IMG/VR virus record: IMGVR_UViG_3300031576_000001
Span: 1 to 64,000 of that record
DNA length: 64,000 bases
Strand: one strand, 5' to 3'
Made by a program: the position numbers and the translations under genes
Notes under the pieces: generated by a model
Database searches by the model: none
What the model saw: only the letters and a program-made list of their open reading frames with translations
What the model was told of the DNA's origin: nothing
Shown here: positions 19,208 to 30,254 of the stretch, piece by piece
How the letters are laid out: each line of letters opens with the position of its first letter
How positions within the stretch are numbered: position 1 is the stretch's first letter

Positions 19208-19285
19208 GGTTCCTTCATCTAAACGGACTAGGAGACCCTTGCTAACGCGAGGAGGATGTACGTTCAAATCGTACAGGAACCACTA
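19208..19285 (+). ncRNA. tRNA-like RNA with an extended anticodon stem closed by a TAAC tetraloop
   Basis: Acceptor GGTTCCT/AGGAACC, T arm GTACG-TTCAAAT-CGTAC; CTTGC-TAAC-GCGAG replaces the 7-nt loop. Confidence 0.65.
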
Positions 19286-19286
19286 A

Positions 19287-19356
19287 GGCGGGCAGTCAAC
19301 CGGCAAGGGTTACTTCACCACTAACGAAAAACACCTTTGCCACCACACCTCCCGCC
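19287..19356 (+). ncRNA. Minimal Y-RNA-like RNA
   Basis: GGCGGG-C-AG-TCA..GGCAAGGGTTACTTC..GAA..CCTTTGCC..CT-CCCGCC. Confidence 0.75.
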
Positions 19357-19363
19357 TACTTAT

Positions 19364-19494
19364 TGCAGTGTAGCTCGACGGTAGAGCACGCATGACGCCC
19401 TGAGCGTCAACCTCCCCAGCTAACGCCGGGGCAGTCATTGCATAGGGTTACTCCCATAAGCAGGACGAGGCGGGGCGTAGTCCCTCCACTGCAA
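19364..19494 (+). ncRNA. tRNA(CAT)-Y-RNA hybrid 2
   Basis: Acceptor TGCAGTG/CACTGCA, D arm TAGCTCGACGGTAGAGC; insert AACCTCCCC-loop-GGGGCAGTCA..TAGGGTTACTCC placed before CATAA; degenerate T loop. Confidence 0.7.
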
Positions 19495-19515
19495 CTTCTA
19501 CGACTTTCAGCCGCG

Positions 19516-19541
19516 AACCTCTCTCAACCAGGAGCAGTCAC
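19516..19541 (+). promoter_or_regulatory. Y-motif-like bulged hairpin covering the Shine-Dalgarno of the Ro60 gene
   Basis: AAC-CT-CTCT-caacca-GGAG-C-AG-TCA-C-ATG has the same geometry as the ncRNA motif. Confidence 0.5.
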
Positions 19542-21101
19542 ATGGGCCAATCCAAGTCGCACAAGAACTTCATGGCGGGCACGAGCTACACAGTCTCGCC
19601 CCTACTCACCCTTCGTATCGCAGCGGCGTCGTGCTTCTTCGGGGAGCCCACGTTCTACGGAGCCAAGGACAGCAAGCCGGTCGCGCCCTCCCAGCAACCC
19701 CAAGCGGTACAGAAGCACCTGAGTGTAACCCTCGGGGGTCTGGGGCAACCTGACTTCTCGGGGCTCACGCCCTCTCAGCGCATGGAGAAGGTCATTGACA
19801 ACGCGCTCGACGCGGACCCCGAGGCTACCCTCCAAGAGGCGGTTCTGCTCCGTAAGCAGGGTCACATTCGTACCACGCCCCAGGTCATCATGGTCCGGGC
19901 GGCGCGTCACCCCAAGGTGAGGGGCACGGGGCTCATCCGGCAGTACGCACCCAACATCCTGTCCAGGGGGGATGAGTCAGCGGTACAACTCAAGTACCTC
20001 AGCAACCTAACGGGCAAGGGGCCCATCCCCAACGCCCTCAAGAAGGCGTGGGCTGCTCACCTCTCGGGCATGAATGAGTACACGCTGGCCAAATACGCCA
20101 AGGACGGGCTGACCGACGTGGCGAACGTGTGTCACCCCGCAGGCAACCCTCTCTTGGAGAAGCTGGTCAAGGGCAAGCTCTCTCAGGGGGGCTCGACTTG
20201 GGAAGCCATCGTGAGCAAGGATGGCTCGACCAAGGAGGCATGGTCCAAGGCGGTCTCCGTCATGGGGCACATGGCGCTCCTACGCAACCTGCGCAACTTC
20301 CACGAGAAGGGCGTAGACCCCGCCGTCTACCTGGACAAGCTGGTGAACACCGCCAAGGACGGCAAGCAATTGCCGTTCCGCTACTGGTCCGCTTACAACG
20401 CCCTATCCGAGGGGAGCGCTACCACGCGGCAAGCCATCGAGGAGTGCTTGAAGAACTCGCTGGGTTTCCTGCCCTTCTTCAAGGGTAAGGTCGCGTCCCT
20501 CTGCGACAACTCAGGTTCCGCGGTGTCTGCCCGGGTGTCGTGCATGAGCGACGTGAACGTGGCGACCATTGCCAACCTCTCGGCGCTTCTCACGGGCTAC
20601 CAGTCGGACGAGGGCTGGGTCGGGCTCTTTGGGGACCGGCTTACGATGCGCCAGGTGGACCGCAGCAAGGCGCCCCTGGCTCAGCTTGCCGCTCTGAACG
20701 TGCTGGGTAAGCAGGTAGGCGGCTACACGGAGAACGGGATTTGGCTCTTCTGGGACGAGGCGATCCGCACCAAGAAGCACTGGGATCACGTTTTTGTCTA
20801 CAGCGACATGCAAGCCGGTCACGGTGACTTGTACGGCTCAGACCCGAGCCAATACAAGGCTTTCCAGTGGGTTCAGAACCCCAGCCACATTGACGTGGCT
20901 CGTCTCATCGGAGCCTACCGCGCCAGCGTGAACCCGAAGGTCAACGTGTTCCTGGTTCAGTGCGCGGGCTACGCAGACGCGATCCTGCCCGAGGAGTACT
21001 ACCGCACCAGCATCCTCGGCGGCTGGGGTGACGGTATCTTCCACTACGCGGACCAGATGACCCGTCTCTTTGACGGTCTGGACGCTTCGCAAGCAACTTG
21101 A
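19542..21101 (+). CDS. Ro60/Rsr-like TROVE-domain RNA-binding protein with a C-terminal vWA domain
   Basis: FFGEPTFY, YTLAKY, TWEAIVS, MGHMALLRNLRN, KQLPFRYWSAY, MIDAS-like DNSGS, VYSDMQ. Confidence 0.93.
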   Translation: MGQSKSHKNFMAGTSYTVSPLLTLRIAAASCFFGEPTFYGAKDSKPVAPSQQPQAVQKHLSVTLGGLGQPDFSGLTPSQRMEKVIDNALDADPEATLQEAVLLRKQGHIRTTPQVIMVRAARHPKVRGTGLIRQYAPNILSRGDESAVQLKYLSNLTGKGPIPNALKKAWAAHLSGMNEYTLAKYAKDGLTDVANVCHPAGNPLLEKLVKGKLSQGGSTWEAIVSKDGSTKEAWSKAVSVMGHMALLRNLRNFHEKGVDPAVYLDKLVNTAKDGKQLPFRYWSAYNALSEGSATTRQAIEECLKNSLGFLPFFKGKVASLCDNSGSAVSARVSCMSDVNVATIANLSALLTGYQSDEGWVGLFGDRLTMRQVDRSKAPLAQLAALNVLGKQVGGYTENGIWLFWDEAIRTKKHWDHVFVYSDMQAGHGDLYGSDPSQYKAFQWVQNPSHIDVARLIGAYRASVNPKVNVFLVQCAGYADAILPEEYYRTSILGGWGDGIFHYADQMTRLFDGLDASQAT

Positions 21102-21163
21102 CGCTTGCGTGTAGCTGCAACGACGGTCTGGACGCCCAGACCCCGTTACAAGATATCCCTCCC

Positions 21164-21209
21164 GTGCTACGTGTACCTCGCAGTCAGTTCAGGGTACACG
21201 TAGCACTTT
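21164..21209 (+). terminator. 14-bp perfect hairpin followed by TTT (terminator or processing stem)
   Basis: GTGCTACGTGTACC / GGTACACGTAGCAC. Confidence 0.5.
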
Positions 21210-21279
21210 CCCGGTTCGTTCAGTGGTAGGACAGGATGTTTTGGTTATCCTTACCGTGGTTCGATTCCACGACCGGGGG
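21209..21279 (+). tRNA. tRNA-Gln(TTG)
   Basis: Cloverleaf; anticodon loop TTTTGGT; TTCGATT T loop. Confidence 0.8.
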
Positions 21280-21280
21280 C

Positions 21281-21949
21281 TCATACAAACTGAGGCGTAG
21301 CAGACAGGGCTGAGGCTAACTTGCTCAGCCGCTTGTCGATGGCCTCGTATTCGCGCACCACGTTGCGTTCTGCGTAGGAGAGGTCAGACGAGGGGATCTG
21401 TTTCAGAACCTCCATGATGCCGGCCCTGTTACGCATAACGTCCCGGTTGGCGAAGAACTCTAGCTCGTCCGCCAGACCCTCAAACTTGCGTAGCGTGACC
21501 GCCAGACCGAGAAGGGTAGCCTTGACCGCTGCGATCTCCTTCTCAGCCGATCCGCCCAGCTTGTAGGTTATGTCGTCGAAAGCCTTCTGGGGAAAGTAGT
21601 TCCGAGGGTCTCTCAGTTGATCCAGGGTTTGGTTCTGAAAAGTTCCCCAGTAGACGCCTCCCGTGCCCTGCTCGACCTTGGCTGTGCCTCCAAAGGTACC
21701 AGGGACCGTCTGACCGCGAGACTGCACGTCCAACGCAAAGAAAAAGTTGGGTGTGTACTCACCCGGGGTGTCTAGCCACCAAGAGAAGTTAACCCCCATG
21801 ACGGTTTTGTGTCCACCTCGATACTCGCAGGCTAGCCCGCTCTTTTGCGTGAAGTAGGCAGCGTAAGCCTTACCAGCCCGCCCCATCAGGCGCCCCACGT
21901 CAGCGAGAGGGTTGGCGCCAGCCGCGCCACGGTCGTAATTGTAGGTCAT
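21281..21949 (-). CDS. Hypothetical protein
   Basis: Long ORF; likely start MTYNYDR at 21949. Confidence 0.7.
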   Translation of the reverse strand: MTYNYDRGAAGANPLADVGRLMGRAGKAYAAYFTQKSGLACEYRGGHKTVMGVNFSWWLDTPGEYTPNFFFALDVQSRGQTVPGTFGGTAKVEQGTGGVYWGTFQNQTLDQLRDPRNYFPQKAFDDITYKLGGSAEKEIAAVKATLLGLAVTLRKFEGLADELEFFANRDVMRNRAGIMEVLKQIPSSDLSYAERNVVREYEAIDKRLSKLASALSATPQFV

Positions 21950-22139
21950 GGTTTCCAAGAGCGACGGGGACAAGACCCTTACAGGGGCACGCGACACCCT
22001 CTCAGAGGTTTGCGAAGCATTGTGCGTCATCCATGGTGACGCGATGCGTCAAAGACCCGAAGGTGGGTGGGTGTGCTACCCATGTGAGGCAGAAGAAAAA
22101 CAAACCCGTCAGGAAGCCTGTACAAAACTTGTCTATCCC

Positions 22140-22248
22140 GGTGTAGCAAGATACAGTAGCCGAGAACCCGCCGGCAGTTGAGGTAGGGTCGGAGCTACAG
22201 ACCGAGCGAGGTTCCCTTAGATGGGAGCGTGGTTCCTTGACAACTGAA
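22140..22248 (+). promoter_or_regulatory. tRNA-array leader: GGTGTA promoter motif, hairpin, and boxA-like GTTCCTTGACAACTGAA
   Basis: 22232-22248 resembles the rrn-leader boxA (GTTCTTTGAAAACTGAA) and lies immediately before the first tRNA. Confidence 0.55.
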
Positions 22249-22255
22249 ACCTTTT

Positions 22256-22335
22256 CTAGCTCACGTAGCTGGTGCTACAGGCGGTCTGTAAAACCGCTGT
22301 CCATGACATGCGGGGTTCGATTCCCCGGGGCTAGG
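22256..22335 (+). tRNA. tRNA-Tyr(GTA)
   Basis: GCGGT-CTGTAAA-ACCGC; variable arm present. Confidence 0.8.
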
Positions 22336-22339
22336 CTGA

Positions 22340-22412
22340 CAAGCTGTAGGCGCAAGGAGTGCTACCAGCATGGAATGCTGGGGGTGTGTAGGTCATATCT
22401 ACACCGGCTTGT
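22340..22412 (+). tRNA. Atypical tRNA, anticodon GGA (Ser?), short variable arm
   Basis: CCAGC-ATGGAAT-GCTGG; degenerate T loop. Confidence 0.5.
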
Positions 22413-22415
22413 CAA

Positions 22416-22515
22416 TCGAGGAAGCCACAGGCGTGGCCTTTGGGGGTGATACCCTGAAGCGGGGTGTGCAGTGTGCATAACTGGGCACCAGCGGGTCCGA
22501 TTCCCACTCCTCGGG
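22416..22515 (+). ncRNA. Atypical tRNA-like RNA with a long extra arm
   Basis: CGAGGA/TCCTCG acceptor; GGG-TCCGATT-CCC T arm. Confidence 0.45.
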
Positions 22516-22555
22516 CTTGTACCGTGCTCACCGGGGCTATACGGTGAGGTTTTAT

Positions 22556-22628
22556 CCGCGCAAATCCTTGGTGGTCTAGGTACCTGTCTGATATACAGGC
22601 GATGGGAGTTCGACTCTTCCTGCGCGGA
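22556..22628 (+). tRNA. tRNA-Ile(GAT)
   Basis: CCTGT-CTGATAT-ACAGG. Confidence 0.8.
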
Positions 22629-22630
22629 CT

Positions 22631-22703
22631 GTGGCCGGTGGTTGCATGGTGCGACCGTCTAACTGTGAATTAGACTTCAGAGGGTTCGATTCCCTTCGGT
22701 CAC
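22631..22703 (+). tRNA. tRNA-His(GTG)
   Basis: TCTAA-CTGTGAA-TTAGA. Confidence 0.8.
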
Positions 22704-22929
22704 TCTGGCGTGCCTAGGGCACGTCTTACGCTTTCCGTTCCGGCTTGAAAGTCTTGGGCTGCGCGCGTACACCCAAGAGGAGTAGAGAGAGGGAGACTCT
22801 AACCAGATTGATCCTCTGGTGTACATCTGAAAAGAGGGGAGACCTGTGTGCGAGTCACAGGGAGGGCACTAGTCGAGAGCAGTGTTGAATGGTTCAGCGA
22901 GGGAGAGGATGCCCGACTGCCCGACGAAT

Positions 22930-23001
22930 TCCGAGGTTGTCAACGGTAGGGCGACCACACTGTTACTGTGGTGTTTGCAGGTCCGACTCCTGCCCTCGGA
23001 G
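22930..23001 (+). tRNA. tRNA-Asn(GTT)
   Basis: CCACA-CTGTTAC-TGTGG. Confidence 0.75.
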
Positions 23002-23303
23002 CCCGGTACGCGGAAGGGGTAAGCGATGCCTCTTCGTGCGTGCCTGAGATTACGTGCTCTAGTTCAACGCTAGAACAACGTCACTGGCTCGTCGTGGGCC
23101 GGCGTGTAGATGCAACGCACGGTGTGCTCCGCGCTAGCCTTTGGTTAGTTGCACAGACTACCCTTTGGTTTGACACCCAAAGGTGGCCCGTCTTGGACAA
23201 GACAGGGGTATCTCACCCCTCGGAGTCCCATGAGGATGACGAAATCAGAACCGGCGGAGGCTGTGTTTACACGGTCGAAGAAACCGGGGACGGAGAGAAC
23301 TAT

Positions 23304-23376
23304 GCCACCCAAGCACATCTGGTGATTGCAGTCCCCTGAAGAGGGAAACGGCCCGGTTCGATCCCGGGGGGTGGCA
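23304..23376 (+). tRNA. tRNA-Phe(GAA)
   Basis: TCCC-CTGAAGA-GGGA. Confidence 0.8.
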
Positions 23377-23449
23377 CTACGGGCGACAAGACTTGTGGTT
23401 CGAGTCCACACTGATTCTTCTGAGAGACGAAGGGTCGGGTAACGGATAA

Positions 23450-23523
23450 CAGCGTGAAGTCTTATGGCGAGACGCCAGTTCGGGGAACTGGAGATCGGAG
23501 GTTCAATTCCTCTCACGCTGACC
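23450..23523 (+). tRNA. tRNA-Pro(GGG)
   Basis: CCAGT-TCGGGGA-ACTGG. Confidence 0.75.
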
Positions 23524-23597
23524 GCGGAAGAGTGGCACGGTTCCATAGCTGGCTCATACCCAGAATACATTCAGTTCAACTCTGATTTCCGCCACCA
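23523..23597 (+). tRNA. tRNA-Met(CAT)
   Basis: CTGG-CTCATAC-CCAG; encoded CCA end. Confidence 0.75.
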
Positions 23598-23607
23598 GTG
23601 AAGACAT

Positions 23608-23684
23608 TGCGGCGTGGAGCAGCCTGGAAGCTCGCAAGGCTCATAACCTTGAGGTCGTCGGTTCAAATCCGACCGCTCGCGACA
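23608..23684 (+). tRNA. tRNA-fMet-like (CAT)
   Basis: GTGGAGCAGCCTGGAAGCTCG...CTCATAA...GGTCGTCGGTTCAAATCCG is close to bacterial initiator tRNA. Confidence 0.85.
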
Positions 23685-23685
23685 A

Positions 23686-23790
23686 AGAGTGTAGTCAAAG
23701 AAGAGGGTTACTTCCTCTAGTAAGAGAAACCTGACGGTTCGATTCCGTCCCGGCGTGGTCGCCATACACTCTCTTCGTTCATCTCACTCT
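23686..23790 (+). ncRNA. YrlA-like Y RNA with an internal T arm
   Basis: AGAGTG-T-AG-TCA..GAAGAGGGTTACTTC..GACGG-TTCGATT-CCGTC..CTCTCTTC..CT-CACTCT. Confidence 0.8.
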
Positions 23791-23793
23791 CTA

Positions 23794-23867
23794 TCCTCGG
23801 TAGCTCAAGTGAAGAGCACCTCCTGTTTACAGGGGTTGATGCTAGGTTCGATGCCTAGCCCTTGGGC
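23794..23867 (+). ncRNA. tRNA-like RNA with an expanded anticodon arm (CTG-TTTA-CAG)
   Basis: Canonical D and T arms; imperfect acceptor stem. Confidence 0.55.
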
Positions 23868-23917
23868 AATCCGTGATGGGGCAACTCGGGCAACAGGGTA
23901 CCCAGCACGGTCGTATT

Positions 23918-23986
23918 GTGCAAGAGTCAAGGCGACAACGTGGTTTCCAAATCCACGGAAGGTGGGTTCGATTCCTCCCTTGCACG
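23918..23986 (+). tRNA. tRNA-Trp(CCA)
   Basis: CGTGG(T)-TTCCAAA-(T)CCACG. Confidence 0.65.
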
Positions 23987-23988
23987 CT

Positions 23989-24088
23989 AGGTGTAGTCAA
24001 GCCCAGAGGTTCATCATACAATAGATGCTGGCTCCCTTGCGAGAGCCAGCACCCCGTACCAAACCACCTCTTGGTAACAATCTCACCT
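23989..24088 (+). ncRNA. Y-RNA-like RNA
   Basis: AGGTG-T-AG-TCA..AGAGGTTCATC..internal hairpin..ACCTCT..CT-CACCT. Confidence 0.7.
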
Positions 24089-24093
24089 TTTCT

Positions 24094-24113
24094 GGCGTCG
24101 TGGCTCAGTGGTT
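24094..24113 (+). pseudogene. 5' fragment of a tRNA disrupted by the HNH insertion
   Basis: GGCGTCGTGGCTCAGTGGTT ends at the HNH promoter. Confidence 0.55.
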
Positions 24114-24134
24114 GGGCCGGTGTATGCACATCTT

Positions 24135-24500
24135 ATGGCTGAATCAGAGCTTGTGACTTGTTGTGGTAAGACAATACAAAAGAGGCACCTCAAGACGCAC
24201 TTGAGGCTCAAGCACAAAGACTTCTCTCTCATACGTAGGGACTCAACACGGAGAGAGCGCCTTATTGTTGAGAGGGGGCATCGTTGTCAGGTGTGTGGCA
24301 TGTCTGAATGGATGGGCGTCAACATACCCATTGAGCTTGACCATACTGATGGCAATTGTGAAAACAATACGAGGGAGAACTTGAGGCTAATATGCCCCAA
24401 TTGCCATGCCCAAACTCCGACCTATCGGGGTAAGAATATGGGTAAAAGTGGGCATACCAAGCGAGCGACTATACTGAAGAAGTATGGTAGTTATCGTTGA
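24135..24500 (+). CDS. HNH homing endonuclease
   Basis: CQVC...ELDHTDGNCENNTRENLRLICPNCHAQT; lower GC; GGTGTA 10 nt upstream. Confidence 0.9.
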   Translation: MAESELVTCCGKTIQKRHLKTHLRLKHKDFSLIRRDSTRRERLIVERGHRCQVCGMSEWMGVNIPIELDHTDGNCENNTRENLRLICPNCHAQTPTYRGKNMGKSGHTKRATILKKYGSYR

Positions 24501-24503
24501 TTC

Positions 24504-25063: not shown

Positions 25064-25153
25064 GCCCTGGTAGCTCAACTACGAGAGCGCCCCTGTAGTG
25101 TCCCCAGGGACCAACAGGGGAGGTTGGAGGTGCAAATCCTTCCCCGGGCCCCA
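25064..25153 (+). ncRNA. tRNA-like RNA whose anticodon arm is replaced by a long hairpin; CCA end
   Basis: CCCCTGT..GTCCC-CA-GGGAC..ACAGGGG lies between normal D and T arms. Confidence 0.65.
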
Positions 25154-25158
25154 TGTTT

Positions 25159-25233
25159 GCCAACGTAGCCCAACTAGGTAGAGGCAACTGCCCGAGGCGC
25201 AGTACAGTGAGAGTCCGAATCTCTTCGTTGGTA
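25159..25233 (+). tRNA. tRNA-Leu(GAG), short variable arm
   Basis: ACTGC-CCGAGGC-GCAGT. Confidence 0.7.
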
Positions 25234-25243
25234 CTTGATAAAG

Positions 25244-25314
25244 CGTGCTGTTTCCCTTGGAGGGTGGGCGGTCTTCTAAACCGCTACGTGTGTGTTCAAT
25301 TCTCACCAGCACGA
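25244..25314 (+). tRNA. tRNA-Arg(TCT)
   Basis: GCGGT-CTTCTAA-ACCGC. Confidence 0.7.
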
Positions 25315-25317
25315 CAA

Positions 25318-25389
25318 TGCGTGGGCGTCCCGGGGACAACAGAGGCTTTGACCCTCTGGAAAAAGGTTCGACTCCTTTCTCGCGTACCA
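25318..25389 (+). tRNA. tRNA-Gln(TTG)
   Basis: AGAGG-CTTTGAC-CCTCT; CCA end. Confidence 0.75.
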
Positions 25390-25452
25390 AGGTGTAGTCA
25401 CTCAGAGGGTTACTTCGGCAAGAACAGGCACCCTCTAAACTCTATCTCACCT
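25390..25452 (+). ncRNA. Minimal Y-RNA-like RNA
   Basis: AGGTG-T-AG-TCA..AGAGGGTTACTTC-GGCAA-GAA..ACCCTCT..CT-CACCT. Confidence 0.75.
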
Positions 25453-25458
25453 TCCAAT

Positions 25459-25529
25459 GGAACCGTAGCTCTAAGGCAGAGCACGACGCTCTTAACGTCA
25501 GGGTCAGGGTTCGATTCCCTGTGGTTCCA
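25459..25529 (+). tRNA. tRNA-Lys(CTT)
   Basis: GACG-CTCTTAA-CGTC. Confidence 0.8.
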
Positions 25530-25612
25530 CGATAGGAGCAGTCACTTGAGTAGGCAGGTGAGAGCAGACGTGCTTAGGGTCGCCAGACGCAACCCTCTGT
25601 TTTTGCTTACAA

Positions 25613-25688
25613 CGCGCAAACGTCTCTGGTGGGGCAAACAGCCTGACGTGCTGTTCTTGGACGGGTTCGATTCCCTCTTGCGTGACCA
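25613..25688 (+). tRNA. tRNA-Val(GAC)
   Basis: ACAGC-CTGACGT-GCTGT; CCA end. Confidence 0.7.
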
Positions 25689-25724
25689 GCGTAAAGCCCT
25701 ATGGTGGGGCGCTTGCTTTGGGTA
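25687..25724 (+). pseudogene. 5' half of tRNA-Pro(TGG) truncated at the anticodon loop by the HNH insertion
   Basis: CAGCGTAAAGCCCTATGGTGGGGCGCTTGCTTTGGGT has the same D arm as tRNA-Pro(CGG) at 24914. Confidence 0.7.
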
Positions 25725-25761
25725 CGTGGCACGCTCCTGTGCGTTCAGTCATACTAACTGC

Positions 25762-26208
25762 GTGAGTACCAGCAAGTGCTTCAAGTGTAAGTTGACCCTA
25801 CCTACAAGCGAGTTTTCCATTCGCCCCAACGGGAAGCCTACGAGCTACTGTAAAACTTGCCAACGGAGTGCATCTAAAGCCCACTACCAAGCAAACAAGA
25901 CAGCGCACAATCAACGGCGTTGGGCAAGTATTATAAAGTATCGTGATAACGTGACTTCTCACGTTATAAAGATCAAAGAAGGTAGTCCGTGTGTGGACTG
26001 CCACGAGTACCACCCGTACTGGGCTATGGACTTTGACCACCGCGACCCCGCAAACAAAGAGTTCTGTATAGGGCAAGCGGTAAACTTTGGCTACTCACTT
26101 AGTCGTGTGGACGCAGAGATCGCAAAGTGCGACCTTGTTTGCGCGCTGTGCCACAGGTACAGAACTTACGGTCAGCGCAGAAACTTCCGGGTTGTAGCCA
26201 AAAGGTGA
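25762..26208 (+). CDS. HNH-family homing endonuclease
   Basis: CFKC..CKTC zinc finger; CVDC...MDFDHRDP..K...EIAKCDLVCALCHR. Confidence 0.85.
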   Translation: MSTSKCFKCKLTLPTSEFSIRPNGKPTSYCKTCQRSASKAHYQANKTAHNQRRWASIIKYRDNVTSHVIKIKEGSPCVDCHEYHPYWAMDFDHRDPANKEFCIGQAVNFGYSLSRVDAEIAKCDLVCALCHRYRTYGQRRNFRVVAKR

Positions 26209-26259
26209 GGCACCTGTTTTGGGAACAGGTTAATGGCAGTTCGAGTCTGCTCAACCCGA
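26188..26259 (+). tRNA. tRNA-Pro(TGG)
   Basis: CCTGT-TTTGGGA-ACAGG; overlaps the HNH stop codon. Confidence 0.8.
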
Positions 26260-26271
26260 CTTACTATAGTA

Positions 26272-26335
26272 CAGCGTGTGCTCATGGTTACGGGAGTACA
26301 GGAACCAGGGGGTCCGATTCCCTCTACGCTGACCA
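26272..26335 (+). ncRNA. 64-nt truncated tRNA-like RNA (acceptor and T arm, CCA end, single middle hairpin)
   Basis: CAGCGTG/TACGCTG-ACCA; GGGGG-TCCGATT-CCCTC. Confidence 0.55.
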
Positions 26336-26447
26336 GGGTGCCTTTGCTAGTGGAGTGACCTCCCCCAACTCCAACCTCTGCTAGTGACTGCGCGCCCTAT
26401 TCTATACACATTAGGCTGGAACCCATCATTTCAGTCTAATGAGCTAA

Positions 26448-26520
26448 CCCGTTGAAGTCCTCTGGTGGGGACACCACATTGTCAATGTGGCCTTGGCGAG
26501 TTCAATTCTCGTCAGCGGGA
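26448..26520 (+). tRNA. tRNA-Asp(GTC)
   Basis: CCACA-TTGTCAA-TGTGG. Confidence 0.75.
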
Positions 26521-26676
26521 CTACCTGTACCCAACAGTCTCTTCCTACACGCTACTCTACTTCCTGGTTCGATTCCAGGGCACTGCACCTCACGGACAGC
26601 AGAGCTAGCCTAACGGTAAAGGCATTCGTTTTACCAACGGACACTCAACGGAGAGGCAACTCGGGCACGGTAACAT

Positions 26677-26756
26677 GCAGACGTGGTGTAACGGTAGCCA
26701 CGGTGGTCTTAGAAGCCACTGCCTAAAGCGTAGGGGTTCGACTCCCCTCGTCTGCA
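26677..26756 (+). tRNA. tRNA-Leu(TAG)
   Basis: GTGGT-CTTAGAA-GCCAC; variable arm present. Confidence 0.85.
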
Positions 26757-26781
26757 CAAGCCATCGGTGTAAGGTATTCAC

Positions 26782-27210
26782 ATGCAAGCTCTAGCGCTCA
26801 TCGTTTCCGTAGTGGCAGCCTTGGTTGTCATGGCGTTCGTTTCTGAGTCGGGTTCGAGGCTCCGCACGTTTAGTTTGGGGTGCCTCATGGCTCTCGGGGG
26901 CGTTCTCTTCTACGCCCTGCTCACGGTGTACCCCTTCATGGTGGGGTGGAACTGGCTCATGCCGGGGGTCTTTGGGTTGAAGACTCTGGACTTCTGGCAA
27001 GCCTTGGTGCTCATCCTCCTGGCGGGTGTGTTGTTCCACTCTGGGGCTGTTAGCACCAAGAGCGACTTAGGGTTTGTTAGACACAACCCCCTCTTTGCAA
27101 AGAGGGAACACGCTAACGTATTCCAACGGCAGAGAAAGCGGCCTCAGATACCGCAAAGTGTGGGTTCGAGTCCCACCGTTAGCACTGTGAGTCTGTTGGA
27201 AGACTACTAG
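26782..27210 (+). CDS. Small membrane protein
   Basis: Three hydrophobic segments; WNWLMPGVFGLKTLDFWQAL; GGTGTA 10 nt upstream; 3' end runs over a tRNA. Confidence 0.65.
   Translation: MQALALIVSVVAALVVMAFVSESGSRLRTFSLGCLMALGGVLFYALLTVYPFMVGWNWLMPGVFGLKTLDFWQALVLILLAGVLFHSGAVSTKSDLGFVRHNPLFAKREHANVFQRQRKRPQIPQSVGSSPTVSTVSLLEDY
27112..27184 (+). tRNA. tRNA-Leu(CAG), short variable arm
   Basis: GCGG(C)-CTCAGAT-(A)CCGC. Confidence 0.75.
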
Positions 27211-27302
27211 AAAGCAAGACCATTTGGGGGCGTGTATCCCGCATGCTCCCCCCCTCAGATCAAAACCAAAGCAAGGTGGTCCCCGGATAGAGTTTTCCTT
27301 CT

Positions 27303-27378
27303 GCTCCCGTCGTCTAAAGGTAGGTACACTGGGTTCTCAACCCAGAAATGGCGAGTTCAATTCTCCCCGGGAGTACCA
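27303..27378 (+). tRNA. tRNA-Glu(CTC)
   Basis: CTGGG-TTCTCAA-CCCAG; CCA end. Confidence 0.85.
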
Positions 27379-27388
27379 CACACAACTT

Positions 27389-27463
27389 GTCTCCGATGCT
27401 CAATGGAAGGGCGCGTGTCTACGGAACACGTATTTGAGAGTTCGAGTCTCTCCGGGGATGCCA
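27389..27463 (+). tRNA. tRNA-Arg(ACG)
   Basis: CGTGT-CTACGGA-ACACG; CCA end. Confidence 0.85.
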
Positions 27464-27470
27464 GACACAA

Positions 27471-27542
27471 GCCCTTACGGTGCGATGGACGCACACGACC
27501 CTCCGAAGGTCGTCCGTGTCGGTTCGATTCCGACTAGGGGCT
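27471..27542 (+). tRNA. tRNA-Arg(CCG)
   Basis: CGACC-CTCCGAA-GGTCG. Confidence 0.8.
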
Positions 27543-27588
27543 CTCTGCGGTGTATGTCAGCATTGGTTGGCAATACTCTTTCAGTCTT

Positions 27589-27675
27589 GGAACTTGACGG
27601 CTCAATGGTGAGGCCACTAGTCTTGAAAACTAGCTACACCCGAGAGGGTGAGGGGTTCGATTCCTCCTGGTTCCT
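27589..27675 (+). tRNA. tRNA-Ser(TGA)
   Basis: CTAGT-CTTGAAA-ACTAG; long variable arm. Confidence 0.85.
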
Positions 27676-27684
27676 CTGTGTGTT

Positions 27685-27770
27685 GGAAGGCAGAGCCTCA
27701 TGGTGAGGCGCGAGCGTGCTAAGCTCGGTCTAGTCCTCTTGGGACTGTGGTTCGATTCCACTACCTTCCG
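27685..27770 (+). tRNA. tRNA-Ser(GCT)
   Basis: CGAGC-GTGCTAA-GCTCG; long variable arm. Confidence 0.8.
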
Positions 27771-27773
27771 CAA

Positions 27774-27857
27774 GTGCGTAGTCACGAGAGACGGTTACTT
27801 CAACAAAACTGGTGAAATTACCCCCGCAAGGGGGACCGTAGCTCAACAATCTCGCAT
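27774..27857 (+). ncRNA. Y-RNA-like RNA
   Basis: GTGCG-T-AG-TCA..GACGGTTACTTC..GAA..CCCC-GCAA-GGGG..ACCGT..CT-CGCAT. Confidence 0.75.
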
Positions 27858-27865
27858 GATTCTAC

Positions 27866-27941
27866 GCTAGCGTAGCCCAACTAGGCAGAGGCAGCGCACT
27901 CAAAACGCGCAAAGGTGAGGGTCCGAGTCCCTCGGCTAGCA
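27866..27941 (+). tRNA. tRNA-Leu(CAA), short variable arm
   Basis: GCGC(A)-CTCAAAA-(C)GCGC. Confidence 0.75.
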
Positions 27942-27989
27942 CTCAAGACCACAGAGAGGGTGTCTTGTAGACGTACTCGCTCTGGTTTA

Positions 27990-28061
27990 GCTCCCATCGA
28001 CTACTGGCTAGGTTATCGGTTTTTCACACCGAGGGACGGAGATCGATACTCCGTGGGAGCA
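27990..28061 (+). tRNA. tRNA-Glu(TTC)
   Basis: TCGGT-TTTTCAC-ACCGA. Confidence 0.8.
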
Positions 28062-28066
28062 CTTTT

Positions 28067-28139
28067 GCCACGCTAGTCCTCTGGGGAGGGCGCTTGCTTT
28101 ACACGCAAGATTAGCAGGGTTCGATCCCCTGGCGTGGTA
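28067..28139 (+). tRNA. tRNA-Val(TAC)
   Basis: CTTGC-TTTACAC-GCAAG. Confidence 0.8.
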
Positions 28140-28182
28140 CCGAGAGGGGGGCACGGTGTTCCTGTGTAACTCTCTCGACTCT

Positions 28183-28255
28183 GGGTTCTGAGCCGCAAAG
28201 TGTGGCAGTGTGACTGTTAATCCACCGAAGCTGGGCGCGATTCCCAGAGAGCCCT
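28183..28255 (+). tRNA. tRNA-Asn(GTT), divergent
   Basis: Anticodon loop CTGTTAA; GGGTTCT/AGAGCCC acceptor. Confidence 0.6.
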
Positions 28256-28264
28256 CTGGTTACT

Positions 28265-28359
28265 GGTCCTTAAGTTGTACCCCCCTTGGTAACCCAAGCG
28301 TGGGGAGGGGACGCTTGCTGTAGTAGGCAAGGCAGGTTCGACCCCTGCGGGACCAACCA
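28265..28359 (+). ncRNA. Atypical tRNA-like RNA with an elongated D region; CCA end
   Basis: TGGTCCT/GGGACCA-ACCA; GCAGG-TTCGACC-CCTGC. Confidence 0.55.
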
Positions 28360-28366
28360 CTTTCAA

Positions 28367-28431
28367 TCCCAGGTCGTCTAAGGGTAAGGCGATTGACTTT
28401 GACTCGATGTCCCTGTGGGTTCGAGTCCCTC
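28367..28431 (+). pseudogene. tRNA-Gln(TTG) lacking the 3' acceptor strand
   Basis: ATTGA-CTTTGAC-TCGAT and the T arm are present, but there is no CCTGGGA; it abuts the HNH. Confidence 0.6.
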
Positions 28432-29122
28432 TACTCCTACTCGTTCCCGGTTTGCTTCGTAAGTGCGAACCCATTGGCGTATACAGTTATCAGAGACGCC
28501 GTACTTGACCCCGACTGCCACGAAAGAGGACTCCTCTATGTCTTTTTTCAGTGTATCAAAAGTAGGTCTAACCACCTTGCGTCTATGGAATTGTGGCTCT
28601 CTATTAGTGAAGAAGCATTTTCTACCACAGTACTTCTTCCCTAGTGGTGCTTGGTTGAAACATCTTTTGCTGGCGCACTTGGACCTCCTACGTTTACCGC
28701 AATGGGTGGGGAGCGTAGCGTTACAATTTGGGCATACAATGCGTAGGTTCTCCAACCTGTGGTCATTACGCACCCCATTGATCTGATCCAAGATTAGGGC
28801 CATTTTACATCCATTCCAAATCTCGCCTTGACCACAAAGCTCACACTCTCGTCTTTAGGCCCTCCTTGTACAACCTCTCCTTAATGTGTGTTGTGGTGTA
28901 CTTGCTCCCTTCTACAAGTATTTGTTCTATGGGGGCCGCAACAGGAATACAATTTCTCGTCCCGAAGTGAGACGTGTCTGCTCCTAGAGATTCGTAGTGT
29001 TCACGGACTTTCACTCTTGTCTTCATGCAACCCCTAGCAAATCCTAGCCGGTACATAACGTCTGAGAGAGACGAAGCAGCAGCTACTACTTTCAACAAGT
29101 CCTCGTCTGTGTATCGTGCCAT
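28378..29122 (-). pseudogene. Degenerate HNH homing endonuclease (frameshift near 28845; catalytic His apparently replaced by Gln)
   Basis: LKTRV* continues in another frame as ECELCGQGEIWNG...LILDQING..NDHRLENLRIVCPNC. Confidence 0.75.
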
Positions 29123-29136
29123 GTGTGCAGTATTAG

Positions 29137-29207
29137 TCCCGGTTCGTCTAACGGCAAGACAATTCGCTCTGAACGAAAGAACAGTGGTTCGATTCCATTA
29201 CCGGGAA
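29137..29207 (+). tRNA. tRNA-Gln(CTG)
   Basis: TTCG-CTCTGAA-CGAA. Confidence 0.85.
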
Positions 29208-29284
29208 CCGAGACCAGACCTCTCCTTCTACGAGGGGTCGGTGAGCTTTGGTGGCGCGTCACAGTGGCTTGCCAGGTCTCTCTT

Positions 29285-29355
29285 GGGGTTGTAAGTCAAC
29301 GGGAGACTGGTGCCCTTGCAAGGCACAAATGAGGGTTCGATTCCCTCCGACTCCA
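29285..29355 (+). tRNA. tRNA-Ala(TGC)
   Basis: GTGCC-CTTGCAA-GGCAC; G3-U70 pair. Confidence 0.85.
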
Positions 29356-29362
29356 CTAGTGC

Positions 29363-29433
29363 GCTGTGCTCGTCTAACGGTAAGCCGCCACATTGGTATT
29401 GTGGGAATTCGGGTTCAACTCCCGGGCACAGCT
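29363..29433 (+). tRNA. tRNA-Thr(GGT)
   Basis: CCACA-TTGGTAT-TGTGG. Confidence 0.85.
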
Positions 29434-29439
29434 CTCTTT

Positions 29440-29511
29440 GCGACATTGAGCCAAAGGCTGGTTACGACCTTGCCAAGGTCGGTTATGGGGGTTCGAGTCC
29501 CCCATGTCGCT
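29440..29511 (+). tRNA. tRNA-Gly(GCC)
   Basis: CGACC-TTGCCAA-GGTCG. Confidence 0.8.
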
Positions 29512-29512
29512 C

Positions 29513-29629
29513 AGGTCTCTGGCAGAAGCCAAGACACGCCAGGATTCTAGACACTTCTGGCGTGTCTCCGGTGGAAATTGCGCCCCCGTAGCTACGGGGT
29601 GTATACTGGTTCAAATCCAGTGGGGCCTA
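29513..29629 (+). ncRNA. tRNA-like RNA with two long non-canonical arms
   Basis: GGTCTC/GGGGCC acceptor; AGACACGCCAG/CTGGCGTGTCT stem; ACTGG-TTCAAAT-CCAGT T arm. Confidence 0.6.
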
Positions 29630-29634
29630 CTAAT

Positions 29635-29705
29635 GCGGCTCTCGTTCAAAGGCAGGATGAGAGTTTTCCAAACTCATGATCAGGGTTCGATTCCCTGGAG
29701 CCGCA
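29635..29705 (+). tRNA. tRNA-Gly(TCC)
   Basis: GAGT-TTTCCAA-ACTC. Confidence 0.8.
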
Positions 29706-29841
29706 CTCCATGAAACGTGCTCTCTTTTCATCGTGCAAAGGCCCTGCAAACCACAGCAACAAGGCTTGTGTCTGTGGGGCGCACTCTCGCAAGGCGCGTG
29801 ATAAGCGTCTACGGTGGTCCAGGGCGCGGGTTGTATCTGAA

Positions 29842-29913
29842 GGGGTTGTAGTCCAACGGAAAGACGCAGCGTCGGCAACGCTGAAATAGCGGGTTCGATT
29901 CCCCTCTACTCCA
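29842..29913 (+). tRNA. tRNA-Ala(GGC)
   Basis: CAGCG-TCGGCAA-CGCTG; G3-U70 pair. Confidence 0.75.
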
Positions 29914-30099
29914 CAACACAGGCGCACCAAAGTACACGGGGCGTGTGTGCAGTCCGTAAAGGCAGTAGGTAGGAGACTACTCATGTTCCTGCCCTGACGC
30001 GTTGGTACTCCGTACCTAACCAGGGTGTTGGCCCGTTCAATTCGGGTCTAGGGGGAGCGTGGACGTGTGGTGTAGGGCAGCACAGTACGGGCGAGTTTT

Positions 30100-30172
30100 T
30101 GACGTGGCGTCAAGGCTGACACAGCCGTCTGCAAAACGGCTTGACTATGGGGTTCGAGTCCCCTCTACGTCT
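30100..30172 (+). tRNA. tRNA-Cys(GCA)
   Basis: GCCGT-CTGCAAA-ACGGC. Confidence 0.75.
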
Positions 30173-30176
30173 CTCT

Positions 30177-30254
30177 GGGCATGGTCAGCGATTACTCAAA
30201 GTAAGGGAAGTCCTAAATCGCGTGGAGAGGGTGCGACTCCCTCCTTGTCCACCA
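30177..30254 (+). ncRNA. Atypical tRNA-like RNA with a CCA end
   Basis: GAGGG-TGCGACT-CCCTC T arm; ACCA end; no canonical anticodon arm. Confidence 0.5.

Follow-up and report, generated by a model that had tools for sequence, protein, structure and literature searches.

The tRNA array and its Ro60 gene

The virus described here is a giant (jumbo) phage with a 322-kb genome, and its sequence is present only in DNA runs of one cave metagenome. The window, meaning the whole stretch of 64,000 nucleotides analysed, carries a tRNA gene cluster with about 40 normal tRNAs. ARAGORN recognizes 38 tRNAs in this array. Thr(tgt) at 30730 and a tmRNA come from Rfam, and Cys at 30099 from a relaxed ARAGORN run. 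Three HNH endonuclease genes, one of them split, and a Ro60 gene are also located inside the array. Homologues of Ro60 at E <= 1e-30 number 2742, every one with a TROVE domain; the closest relative by this protein shares 55% identity, and none is nearer. Landmarks of the array include the following:

19542–21101, + strand: Ro60/Rsr orthologue with a TROVE domain, 519 aa (Pfam PF05731, E = 2.3e-10)
25687–25729: 5' half of a tRNA-Pro, which keeps the 5' half only
30256–30633, + strand: tmRNA gene (Rfam RF00023, 52.8 bits)
22340, 23524, 23918 and 28371: further low-scoring elements
22844, 23058, 23394, 26563 and 30031: orphan T arms

Decay does occur in the array, because clear debris is present there, comprising orphan T arms, the 5' tRNA-Pro fragment, the split HNH gene and low-scoring tRNAs. 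Genes for RtcB, a CCA-adding enzyme and PNPase are absent from the phage; therefore, all processing steps would rest on the host.

Eight tRNA-like elements without a decoding middle

Eight odd tRNA-like RNAs had been reported by a sequence-only reading, and they are found where it placed them, all on the + strand and inside the array. Their anatomy was established by a scan for an acceptor stem plus T arm, combined with folds:

19208–19283, + strand: element 1, 76 nt; acceptor 7/7, T stem 5/5, tail A-CUA; full cloverleaf with D arm, the anticodon arm having 6 bp and the loop UAAC, which can equally be drawn as a 6-nt loop; fold z = -3.2; located between the Y-RNA modules Y1 and Y2 (below)
22416–22516, + strand: element 2, 101 nt; acceptor 7/7 (one G-U), T stem 4/5, no 3' tail; an extra hairpin and an over-long arm of ~10 bp (9/10 pairs) with the 7-nt loop GUGCAUA; fold z = -1.8
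23794–23869, + strand: element 3, 76 nt; acceptor 5/7, good 6-bp T stem, no 3' tail; intact D arm and a 6-bp arm with the tetraloop UUUA; z = -1.75; begins at the end of module Y4
25064–25153, + strand: element 4, 90 nt; acceptor 6/7, T stem 5/5, tail C-CCA; D arm, 7-bp arm with a 17-nt loop, T loop UGCAAAU; z = -2.3
26272–26335, + strand: element 5, 64 nt; acceptor 7/7, T stem 5/5, tail A-CCA; anticodon arm absent; acceptor stem almost the same as in tRNA-Pro(ggg), which is the best paralogue (0.76); an HNH gene and the 5' tRNA-Pro fragment lie directly upstream
28264–28359, + strand: element 6, 96 nt; acceptor 7/7, T stem 5/5, tail A-CCA; 41-nt D region with a UAAC-capped hairpin, 6-bp arm with a 6-nt loop; z = -1.7
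29513–29632, + strand: element 7, 120 nt; acceptor 7/7 (two G-U), T stem 5/5, tail A-CUA; short D hairpin, perfect 12-bp arm with a 10-nt loop, long variable hairpin; z = -4.0; flanked flush by two tRNA-Gly genes
30177–30254, + strand: element 8, 78 nt; acceptor 6/7, T stem 5/5, tail A-CCA; minihelix-like, adjoining the tmRNA

The claim that acceptor and T arms are kept stands for six of the eight (19208, 25064, 26272, 28264, 29513 and 30177), which combine a tRNA-type acceptor and T arm with a middle unable to decode; the other two are weaker, as the acceptor is broken in 23794 and 22416 has a T-stem mismatch. A canonical 5-bp anticodon stem with a 7-nt loop, correctly spaced from the elbow, occurs in none of them, and this anatomy agrees with the proposal that they are non-decoding tRNA mimics. 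The remodelled arms differ across all eight, and no common one exists. Gaps to neighbouring genes measure 0–11 nt. "At least eight" also proved correct as a count, as more such RNAs exist, for example at 19037–19181 and 19362–19497, together with low-scoring ones and orphan T arms. Across the non-canonical parts of the array, 16 T-arm-like hairpins lie on the + strand against 2.3 expected (Poisson 4e-9).

None of the eight gives an Rfam tRNA match at E <= 10, and none is called by ARAGORN under default settings; in a relaxed run, 19208 is reported as a tRNA with a 2-nt anticodon, and 25064 is called too. Such proposals of anticodons, made with introns allowed or at low thresholds, would fit the idea that some elements are unusual real decoders. 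These might have small introns or anticodon loops of 6 or 8 nt, as frameshift or suppressor tRNAs, or might serve a missing isotype such as Trp. ARAGORN found no tRNA-Trp in the array, the 29513 loop contains CUA, the 22416 loop reads GUGCAUA, and one drawing of 28264 gives an 8-nt loop. However, the arm stems have 6–12 bp instead of 5 bp, and therefore any anticodon would be wrongly distanced from the elbow. Moreover, Rfam detects no group I intron, no RtcB-type ligase is encoded by the phage, and ORFs in the window are long under table 11, so recoding is not indicated there. A decoding role is thus very improbable.

A CCA end is encoded in 4 of the 7–8 odd elements, compared with 5 of 40 canonical tRNAs (Fisher p = 0.02–0.03, from small numbers). 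Retention of the acceptor stem, the T arm and, in four elements, this CCA could also point to a decoy or sponge role against host factors, either defences or sensors, that read the tRNA acceptor end, CCA or elbow and not the anticodon, such as toxins modifying the 3' CCA end, whereby real phage and host tRNAs would be protected. Jumbo phages are rich in counter-measures against tRNA-directed attack (PMC7824862). On the other hand, encoded CCA is missing in four of the eight, and decoys for anticodon nucleases, which had been suggested, are implausible because the anticodon loops are precisely the missing part. A decoy function in general is considered unlikely.

Y-RNA modules interleaved with the elements

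The Ro60/Y-RNA context of the array was missed by the sequence-only reading. Y RNAs were searched for with a covariance model, R1, whose sole source was 21 RNAs lying next to Ro60 in unrelated metagenome loci. Covariation is strong in this family: 84% of cells are paired, compared with 66% in shuffles and 36–54% in slid controls, and both-side changes occur in 14 of 18 pairs. R1 matches 19283–19361, 23682–23795 and 25385–25458, and weakly 27769–27863, which gives 3–4 copies in the window; no match occurs elsewhere in the 322-kb genome. At E <= 10, the Rfam model of YrlA (RF02553) finds nothing in the window. A relaxed Y motif has 16 matches genome-wide, seven of them on the + strand of the array, including one at 30183, within element 30177. 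Together with RNAs recognized by fold and reading, the previously unannotated modules are as follows:

19037–19181, + strand: Y1, a tRNA-shaped RNA with a Y module, absent from the earlier list
19283–19361, + strand: Y2, minimal Y-RNA module (R1 32.6 bits, E = 1.6e-6; best match in the 322-kb genome)
19362–19497, + strand: Y3, a second tRNA-shaped RNA with a permuted Y module (fold, motif and sequence reading)
23682–23795, + strand: Y4, Y-RNA module (R1 21.3 bits, E = 1.8e-3, with a 38-nt insertion)
23988–24092, + strand: Y5, degenerate Y-like hairpin read from sequence, with GUAGUCAA...GGUUCAUCA...AAUCUCACCUU; R1 fails to detect it
25385–25458, + strand: Y6, minimal Y-RNA module (R1 23.3 bits, E = 5e-4)
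27769–27863, + strand: Y7, weak Y-like module (R1 13.3 bits, E = 0.26), with GUAGUCA...GGUUACUUC

The modules are interleaved with the odd elements; each has a tRNA or tRNA-like gene on either side, only 0–3 nt away, and fills the space between the two. Y6 fills exactly the spacer between tRNA-Gln and tRNA-Lys, and Y7 lies between tRNA-Ser and tRNA-Leu. Y2 consists of an outer stem, a bulge, an AG:CU pair step, an internal loop and an inner stem, with UUACUUC...ACGAAAAACAC in its loop. The large loop of Y4 contains a T arm (23733–23749).

Y1 and Y3 join both kinds of RNA in one molecule. Y1 has an open 7-bp acceptor stem (7/7 in the scan), a D arm, a T arm and an ACC tail, and its anticodon arm is swapped for a complete module of the Y-RNA type, predicted to bind Ro60, in circularly permuted order; with introns allowed, ARAGORN reports it as a tRNA with a 68-nt "intron". 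Its unconstrained MFE fold (z = -3.0) shows a 7-bp helix that a bulged C separates from 2 further bp; next come an internal loop and an inner stem of 7 bp, bordered by UUACUUC and AACGAAAGCAC. These features match the family in alignment A1. Y3 has a 7-bp acceptor, a canonical D arm and a GC-rich hairpin in place of the T arm. It carries the motif CAGUCA...GGGUUACUCC, and the helix CU-CCCC / GGGG-C-AG with an inner stem of 7/8 pairs can be read from its sequence.

Among the functions proposed earlier, that of Ro60 substrates is the sole one to gain evidence, from the Ro60 gene in the array and the interleaved modules. The link reaches the reported elements in part: Y motifs occur in 30177 and in the two neighbouring tRNA-shaped RNAs, seven of the eight elements have none, and R1 matches none of the eight. 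The middle of 30177 contains GGUCA-GCGA-UUACUC, closed by AAUCGC; it is barely structured, with stability no better than shuffled sequences (fold z = +0.4). Processing punctuation, another of the proposals, is consistent with 19208 and 23794, which adjoin Y modules.

Relation to known RNAs

YrlA (Rfam RF02553) is a tRNA-mimicking Y RNA of bacteria and phages that is bound by Ro60/Rsr (PMC4201824; bioRxiv 10.1101/312249). In M. smegmatis, RNase P cleaves this RNA, to which CCA is also added (Chen et al. 2014, PMC4201824). The phage RNAs resemble it as same-strand neighbours of Ro60 in which a T arm, a D arm and an acceptor-like stem are joined with a Ro60-binding helix, and YrlA motifs (YAGUGA-type 5' strand, UUACUUC, CGAA) are found in Y1–Y4, Y6 and Y7. 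Classical YrlA ends in the Ro60 helix and has a closed acceptor hairpin, whereas in Y1 and Y3 the acceptor ends are open and the Ro60 helix is closed; therefore, Y1 and Y3 are circular permutations of YrlA. The motif in this phage also differs, being AGUCA in place of AGUGA, and the Ro60 helix is wholly absent from seven of the eight reported elements.

The minimal modules share the stem-bulge-stem form and the CGAA-containing loop of YrlB and of Yrl1/Yrl2 from Thermus phage phiLo. In phiLo, Ro60 binds the Y-like RNAs encoded by the phage, and both Ro60 and these RNAs bind PNPase of the host (PMC12135203). Minimal Y RNAs lie upstream of phage Ro60, as here, but in this phage they are also dispersed within the tRNA array at distances from Ro60 of up to 8 kb, and every one has tRNA or tRNA-like genes on its two sides.

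Element 30177 resembles the tRNA-like domain of tmRNA and alanine minihelices in having G1-C72, G2-C71, G3:U70, A73, CCA and a T arm and in lacking an anticodon arm, and in this it matches the phage's tmRNA, which starts one base beyond it. By these alanine identity elements, it is a candidate AlaRS substrate. The Rfam permuted-tmRNA model gives 38 bits on it, under the threshold. Unlike tmRNA, 30177 has no mRNA-like part and no pseudoknots, and contains a Y-type motif instead.

Two further systems are comparable. The stable RNAs C and D of phage T4 (species 1 and 2) are non-decoding, have tRNA-like ends, and are co-transcribed and co-processed with phage tRNAs. T4 is not known to have Ro60 or Y RNA. 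The engineered "tRNA scaffold", used for foreign RNA hairpins in bacteria, carries a payload hairpin in place of the anticodon arm, with processing and stability supplied by the tRNA body. The phage case differs in being natural, and the only payload identified is the Ro60 helix.

Recurrence in other phages and the question of decay

The same mix of tRNA-like and Y RNAs occurs in two further Ro60-encoding jumbo phages, an IMG/VR contig (L004) and Bacillus phage G. L004 has four Y modules interleaved with five tRNAs and five tRNA-like RNAs; no model recognises the latter, whose acceptor is 7/7 in four and 6/7 in one, with an ACCA end in all five. In Bacillus phage G, Ro60 lies in an array of tRNAs and tmRNA with five Y modules and a classical YrlA.

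A serious rival explanation, which we regard as possible though doubtful, is that tRNA pseudogenes make up the set. On this view, duplication, insertion of homing endonucleases and loss shape the array, and the eight are duplicates that 1–2 indels in or near the anticodon arm have disabled. Such relics would look well paired because the lesions are indels with few point changes and because the search was keyed on the acceptor and T arm, an ascertainment bias illustrated by the relic that has the 5' half only (25687–25729). The earlier argument that well-paired stems speak against random decay is weak by itself, since 1–2 indels could give rise to most forms and the array holds clear tRNA fragments. 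The HNH genes, the tRNA-Pro half and the acceptor stem that 26272 has in common with tRNA-Pro(ggg) favour the pseudogene explanation, as do the two acceptor mismatches of 23794, the form of 19208, which differs from a normal tRNA essentially just by a loop that is too short, and a continuum of quality from low-scoring tRNAs through the eight elements to orphan T arms.

However, the 40 canonical tRNAs include no recent parent of any odd element: best identities are 0.61–0.76 (the median best-partner value of canonical tRNAs is 0.73). Far from being eroded, the substituted arms have grown longer and pair perfectly over as many as 12 bp; the junctions with neighbours are preserved, and encoded CCA is commoner than among canonical tRNAs. 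A functional-looking Y module is present in two sister elements and in 30177. Finally, in L004, odd genes equal normal tRNA genes in number and keep the acceptors (7/7 in four, 6/7 in one) and CCA ends described above.

A proposed scaffold role for the tRNA shape

The explanation we consider most likely, with moderate confidence, is that the eight elements are processed, non-decoding tRNA-scaffold RNAs tied to the Ro60/Y-RNA system. It builds on the anatomy of the elements, the Ro60 gene, the Y modules with their covariation in loci elsewhere, the permuted hybrids, the adjacency of the two kinds of RNA, and the recurrence in two phages. Counting against it are the broken acceptor of 23794, the unstable middle of 30177, the small CCA numbers, the absence of the Y motif from seven of the eight, the lack of a shared remodelled arm, the debris in the array, and the dependence on the host for each step of processing. 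Overall, the earlier observation is largely real and partly confirmed, and its interpretation is partly supported.

Under the scaffold explanation, the kept part, a stacked acceptor stem and T arm, would be read by the processing machinery of the cell. After transcription, RNase P would cut the elements out at the 5' end, the 3' end would be trimmed, with CCA already encoded in four, and the products would accumulate as stable small RNAs. In Y1 and Y3, a helix predicted to bind Ro60 replaces the anticodon arm, and 30177, with the same Y motif, may act likewise. Elements 19208 and 23794 directly flank Y RNAs, and their cleavage would set the Y RNA ends. The remaining five (22416, 25064, 26272, 28264 and 29513) carry other hairpins, as putative payloads, where the anticodon arm would be.

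These findings suggest that RNAs without a decoding function are built on a reused tRNA shape in this phage. By analogy with particles of Ro60, Y RNA and PNPase, the whole island would act on structured RNA of the host or the phage.

Setting of the tRNA Array

The strongest new result of this analysis is not the eight tRNA-like elements themselves. It is that the array which holds them is a Ro60/Y-RNA island, with dispersed Y modules and apparently circularly permuted, tRNA-bodied forms of YrlA, the tRNA-mimicking Y RNA (RF02553) that Ro60/Rsr binds in bacteria and phages. The source contig, Ga0247727_10000022, measures 322,633 bp, comes from a cave metagenome and has a G+C content of about 59%, with the window as its first 64 kb. 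Between 19.0 and 31.3 kb nearly everything is carried on the + strand, including 38 tRNAs called by ARAGORN in the array, with three HNH homing-endonuclease genes interspersed, one of them split.

Principal genes of the array (window coordinates)
19542-21101, +: Ro60/Rsr orthologue, ORF with TROVE domain
24108-24500, +: HNH gene
25690-26208, +: HNH gene
28378-28803 and 28841-29122, -: split HNH gene, N- and C-terminal ORFs of one PHROG family
30099-30175: tRNA-Cys(gca), relaxed ARAGORN
30256-30633: tmRNA, Rfam, 52.8 bits
30730-30800: tRNA-Thr(tgt), Rfam

The Ro60 protein has thousands of homologues, with a top identity of 55%, and an ORF with a phosphoribosyltransferase domain (18384-18992, +) lies immediately upstream of the Y-RNA/Ro60 block. 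The tmRNA is not called by ARAGORN. Its tag frame (30350-30499) reads ANDNVEAAPLALAA, with UUA at the stop position and the frame open for 28 further codons, so it may be a stop-loss variant or carry an unusually long tag. The HNH ORF at 25690 starts within a 5' tRNA-Pro(UGG)-like fragment (25687-25729) and ends within an intact tRNA-Pro(tgg). An initiator-like tRNA-Met (23609-23681) has a bulged T in the acceptor 3' strand (GCGGCG versus CGC-T-CGC) and still scores 50 bits with Rfam. Far from the array and outside the window, ARAGORN reports a lone tRNA with the amber-reading anticodon CUA, labelled 'Pyl', at 307803-307877 (-) of the whole genome. An alternative genetic code was considered and rejected, as the ORFs of the window give no sign of recoding.

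Architecture of the Eight Elements

A scan of both strands sought 5-bp hairpins whose 7-nt loop resembles a T loop and whose next 7 nt can pair with a segment 55-170 nt upstream; each claimed element was also folded individually. On the + strand, 16 T-arm-like hairpins lie outside canonical genes, where the rest of the window would predict 2.3 (Poisson 4e-9); they are therefore tRNA-derived sequences and not chance hairpins.

The eight elements, all on the + strand, and the fold of their anticodon-arm region
19208-19283: 6-bp stem, 4-nt loop
22416-22516: about 10 bp
23794-23869: 6-bp stem, 4-nt loop
25064-25153: 7-bp stem, 17-nt loop
26272-26335: arm absent
28264-28359: 6-bp stem, 6-nt loop, beside a 41-nt D region
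29513-29632: 12-bp stem, 10-nt loop
30177-30254: arm absent

Scan and folds agree on the tRNA arrangement, in which a 7-bp acceptor is stacked on a T stem of 5 bp and the T loop follows U-U/G/C-C-R-A. Five elements have a fully paired acceptor (7/7), two reach 6/7 and one 5/7, and the T stem is paired 5/5 in seven and 4/5 in one. The sequence-only reading had held that all eight keep both arms. This stands for six (19208, 25064, 26272, 28264, 29513 and 30177), in which the acceptor is paired 7/7 or 6/7 and the T stem 5/5. It is weakened for 22416, where a full acceptor (7/7) accompanies a C-A mismatch in the T stem, and for 23794, whose D, T and capped arms are good and whose acceptor has two central mismatches.

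The further claim that the anticodon arms are remodelled or missing is borne out throughout, since this region is unfit for decoding in all eight. None has the 5-bp anticodon stem with 7-nt loop of a canonical tRNA; neither RF00005 nor any other model of the Rfam tRNA clan matches over any of them at E <= 10, and ARAGORN, which had been named as a check, calls none (0/8) by default.

The initial list was incomplete and non-uniform. Two larger tRNA-shaped RNAs lie upstream of Ro60, and the array additionally holds four low-scoring near-tRNAs, several orphan T arms and one 5' tRNA-Pro fragment. Orphan T-arm hairpins whose acceptor partner is absent occur on the + strand at 22844, 23058, 23394, 26563 and 30031. 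The hairpin at 26563 has CUACUCUACUUC before it and GCACCUCAC after it, and may be another degenerate Y module.

A Y-RNA Family Defined from Other Loci

A repeat consisting of GUAGUCA, about 10 nt and GGGUUACUUC occurs in five copies on the + strand of the whole genome, all five within the array. It was first considered as a promoter, a reading rejected on its spacing, which is unlike that of sigma-70 promoters, and on its near confinement to the array; a consensus scan found fewer promoter-like sites than in shuffles. The repeat instead belongs to Y RNAs, of which it forms the 5' strand and the loop. Scanning IMG/VR for the exact pattern returned single, chance-level matches only.

The upstream regions of Ro60 genes in unrelated loci from IMG/VR and JGI metagenomes (Ro60 43-53% identical) were inspected for comparison. 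Nearly every one carries a Y signature on the Ro60 strand, mostly less than 700 nt from the gene, composed of YAGUGA, about 8 nt, GGUUACUUC and a later UUCUCC. Twenty-one such RNAs can be aligned on one structure, in which the outer stem leads through a bulged C or U to two invariant AG:CU pairs and then across an internal loop to the inner stem, whose loop starts with UUACUUC and ends in an A-rich ...ACAC. In their alignment 84% of cells are paired, against 66% in shuffles and 36-54% when partners are slid, and both sides change in 14 of 18 pairs; the structure is supported by covariation. Ro60 is known to recognise a bulged helix, chiefly by the conserved 5' strand of the latter, and CGAA lies in the loop (PMC4201824; bioRxiv 10.1101/312249; PMC12135203). 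The common structure is predicted to be the Ro60-binding stem of bacterial Y RNAs. The Rfam YrlA model overlaps matches of this type in Bacillus phage G (L155:5760-5846, 36 bits) and in the jumbo-phage contig L004 (17397-17475, 21 bits), which ties the Y module to the YrlA family.

Y Modules in the Array

A covariance model, R1, was built solely from the 21 foreign sequences and run on the window without filters. Across the whole 322 kb its matches are confined to the array.

Y modules matched by R1 in the window
19283-19361 (Y2): 32.6 bits, E = 1.6e-6; element 19208 before, the RNA at 19362 after
23682-23795 (Y4): 21.3 bits, E = 1.8e-3; T arm inserted in loop; tRNA-Met before, element 23794 after
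25385-25458 (Y6): 23.3 bits, E = 5e-4; tRNA-Gln before, tRNA-Lys after
27769-27863 (Y7): 13.3 bits, E = 0.26; tRNA-Ser before, tRNA-Leu after

The Ro60-type bulged helix, with its conserved 5' strand and the UUACUUC and CGAA loop motifs, is present in Y2, Y4 and Y6 (R1, E <= 2e-3). The Y modules fit the spacers between tRNA and tRNA-like genes with a margin of 0-3 nt, so that RNase P cleavage and 3' maturation of the adjacent genes would set the ends of the Y RNAs. The eight elements lie on the same strand as Ro60, with 19208 located 260 nt upstream of the gene and the others 1.3-9 kb downstream.

R1 matches none of the eight elements (0/8). A relaxed Y motif, with 16 matches genome-wide and 7 of these on the + strand of the array, occurs among them only in 30177, which contains GGUCA-GCGA-UUACUC closed by AAUCGC. 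This element has the features of an alanine acceptor, as read from its sequence: G3:U70, A73, CCA and a T arm, with the anticodon arm absent. AlaRS charges G3:U70 minihelices. The tmRNA, which begins one base downstream, likewise has G3:U70, A73 and CCA, and the Rfam permuted-tmRNA model gives element 30177 38 bits, below its threshold of 47. At 78 nt the element is devoid of an mRNA-like tag region and of pseudoknots, and a complete tmRNA is the next gene. In element 25064, the 5' strand of the arm (25090-25097) reads UGUAGUGU, near the Ro60-contacting consensus GGYAGUGA, with the 3' strand motif missing; this resemblance may be due to chance.

tRNA/Y Hybrids

Y1 (19037-19181) combines an acceptor paired 7/7 with a canonical D arm and a T arm, ends in ACC, and is taken by ARAGORN for a tRNA carrying a 68-nt intron. 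Group I and other introns were rejected, with no Rfam matches; the unconstrained minimum-energy fold (z = -3.0) resolves the supposed intron as a Y module whose parts are permuted. Behind the D arm, AACGAAAGCAC leads into the inner stem's 3' strand and an A-rich internal loop. The next part is a hairpin in which a bulged C separates 7 bp from 2 bp; UCAA, the inner stem's 5' strand and UUACUUC then lead to the T arm. The invariant AG:CU step is GG:CC here, changed on both sides. Y3 (19362-19497) repeats the design with CU-CCCC / GGGG-C-AG, an inner stem with 7 of 8 pairs, UUACUCC and a non-canonical T arm. Direct reading finds the Ro60-type helix, in permuted order, in both RNAs.

A classical YrlA begins and ends within the Ro60 helix, and its acceptor is closed by a loop, whereas Y1 has an open acceptor and a closed Ro60 helix. 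Acceptor ends are open in all elements, including Y1 and Y3, which thus depart from the end topology of YrlA. Y1 is best modelled as a circular permutation of classical YrlA. Between 18500 and 32000, RF02553 has no match at E <= 10, the same model giving 36 bits in phage G and 21 bits in L004. Sequence-only half-profiles for the permuted Y1 and Y3 were uninformative, their motifs being too short; the proposed permutation therefore rests on the unconstrained fold and direct reading.

U55 is universal in the T loop. T loops of the type UGCAA/UGCGA, with G in its place, occur at 19158, 25131, 30232, 30777 and 31086, that is, in Y1, in elements 25064 and 30177 and in the canonical tRNA-Thr(tgt) and tRNA-Thr(cgt). 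They are also seen in Y-associated T arms of locus L128 and in odd elements of L004.

Other Ro60-Encoding Jumbo Phages

The window sequence is present only in two DNA runs of one cave metagenome. INPHARED holds no similar phage, and no Ro60 relative in IMG/VR, JGI metagenomes or a 5.8-billion-protein set is more than 55% identical. In L004 (IMGVR_UViG_3300037110_000087, a 307-kb IMG/VR contig), four Y modules and an HNH gene are interleaved, downstream of Ro60, with five tRNA-likes that the models do not see; five recognised tRNAs are also present. The acceptor of these tRNA-likes is paired 7/7 in four and 6/7 in one, all five end in ACCA, and two of the five directly adjoin Y modules.

Bacillus phage G (L155, JN638751) encodes Ro60 (gp540) within an array of tRNAs and a tmRNA, with four tandem Y modules in the unannotated ~1 kb upstream of the gene and one more within the array. 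A classical YrlA at about 5713-5875 has a 7-bp acceptor hairpin whose loop begins with ACCA. An odd element with a T arm is located at about 11640-11756.

tRNA-likes of L004 and RNAs in unannotated gaps of phage G
L004, 14989-15100: tRNA-like
L004, 15847-15925: tRNA-like
L004, 16079-16152: tRNA-like
L004, 16754-16924: tRNA-like
L004, 17506-17577: tRNA-like
Phage G, 5713-5875: RNA in a gap around gp540
Phage G, 7193-7704: RNA in a gap around gp540
Phage G, 13298-13371: RNA in a gap around gp540

Function versus Decay

The chances are even that the eight elements serve the Ro60/Y-RNA system as processed RNAs with a function other than decoding. That most of them are tRNA pseudogenes is a serious though less probable explanation. 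Evident debris lies in the array, where homing endonucleases are active or broken; 26272 resembles a tRNA-Pro minus its middle, shortening of a loop alone would suffice to produce 19208, and 23794 has lost acceptor pairing. Furthermore, the detection criteria used here and in the sequence-only reading both favour relics in which the acceptor stem and the T arm survive. However, none of the 40 canonical tRNAs is a close parent, as the best identities over acceptor plus D and T plus acceptor (0.61-0.76) are those seen between isoacceptor families. Instead of showing erosion, the novel arms are longer and pair well, the elements sit tightly against neighbouring genes, and CCA is encoded in 4 of 7-8 of them, compared with 5 of 40 among the canonical genes (p = 0.02-0.03). 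Decay also fits poorly with the recurrence of the same mixture of Y modules, tRNAs and unrecognised tRNA-likes in L004, and of Ro60 in a tRNA and tmRNA array with Y modules in phage G. A direct comparison with the canonical tRNAs finds disabling lesions, mostly intact stems and only a loose link of 26272 to tRNA-Pro(ggg) (0.76). The observation behind the sequence-only reading is partly confirmed, and its interpretation as non-decoding mimics partly supported.

Proposed Mechanism

A functional role would build on what is observed, namely the anatomy of the elements, the Ro60 gene, the Y modules and the covariation of their counterparts elsewhere, the permuted hybrids, the adjacency of these parts and their recurrence in two other phages. 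An acceptor/T-arm minihelix suffices for RNase P and the CCA-adding enzyme. In M. smegmatis, YrlA is an RNase P substrate and gains CCA (PMC4201824). On this basis the elements would be cut out and gain stability in the way tRNAs do, the tRNA body serving as a scaffold. Two would act at least as punctuation for Y RNAs, one element and two neighbours would present the Ro60-binding module, and the remaining elements would present other hairpins. Across the 322 kb, no RtcB, CCA-adding enzyme or RNase PH/PNPase domain was found, and the single RNA-ligase-family gene is distant from the array; the system would therefore depend on host enzymes, as in Thermus phage phiLo (PMC12135203).

The complete model is tentative and, taken as a whole, unlikely. 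It holds that this and at least two other Ro60-encoding jumbo phages keep a multi-component RNA system in their tRNA arrays, with the tRNA body as a natural modular scaffold. Its components would be a circularly permuted YrlA with a free CCA end, Y modules freed by tRNA-type punctuation and anticodon-less, CCA-bearing mimics, one of them alanine-chargeable; together with Ro60 and host exonucleases they would remodel or police the tRNA and RNA pool during infection.

Significance

Conservation of Ro60 and Y RNAs extends from bacteria to humans, and the island bears on what the tRNA-like half of bacterial Y RNAs does. Several forms occur together in it: minimal Y modules, others with a T arm only, full tRNA bodies with a Ro60 helix and tRNA bodies with other hairpins. 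This natural series suggests a route by which a tRNA is converted into a Y RNA, and it offers simple constructs for asking which factors the mimic engages, such as RNase P, the CCA-adding enzyme, AlaRS or PNPase. Phage tRNA arrays are under-annotated, because tRNA finders and Rfam miss all these RNAs; a cultured example is Bacillus phage G, in which the 1-kb gap upstream of Ro60 holds four Y modules.
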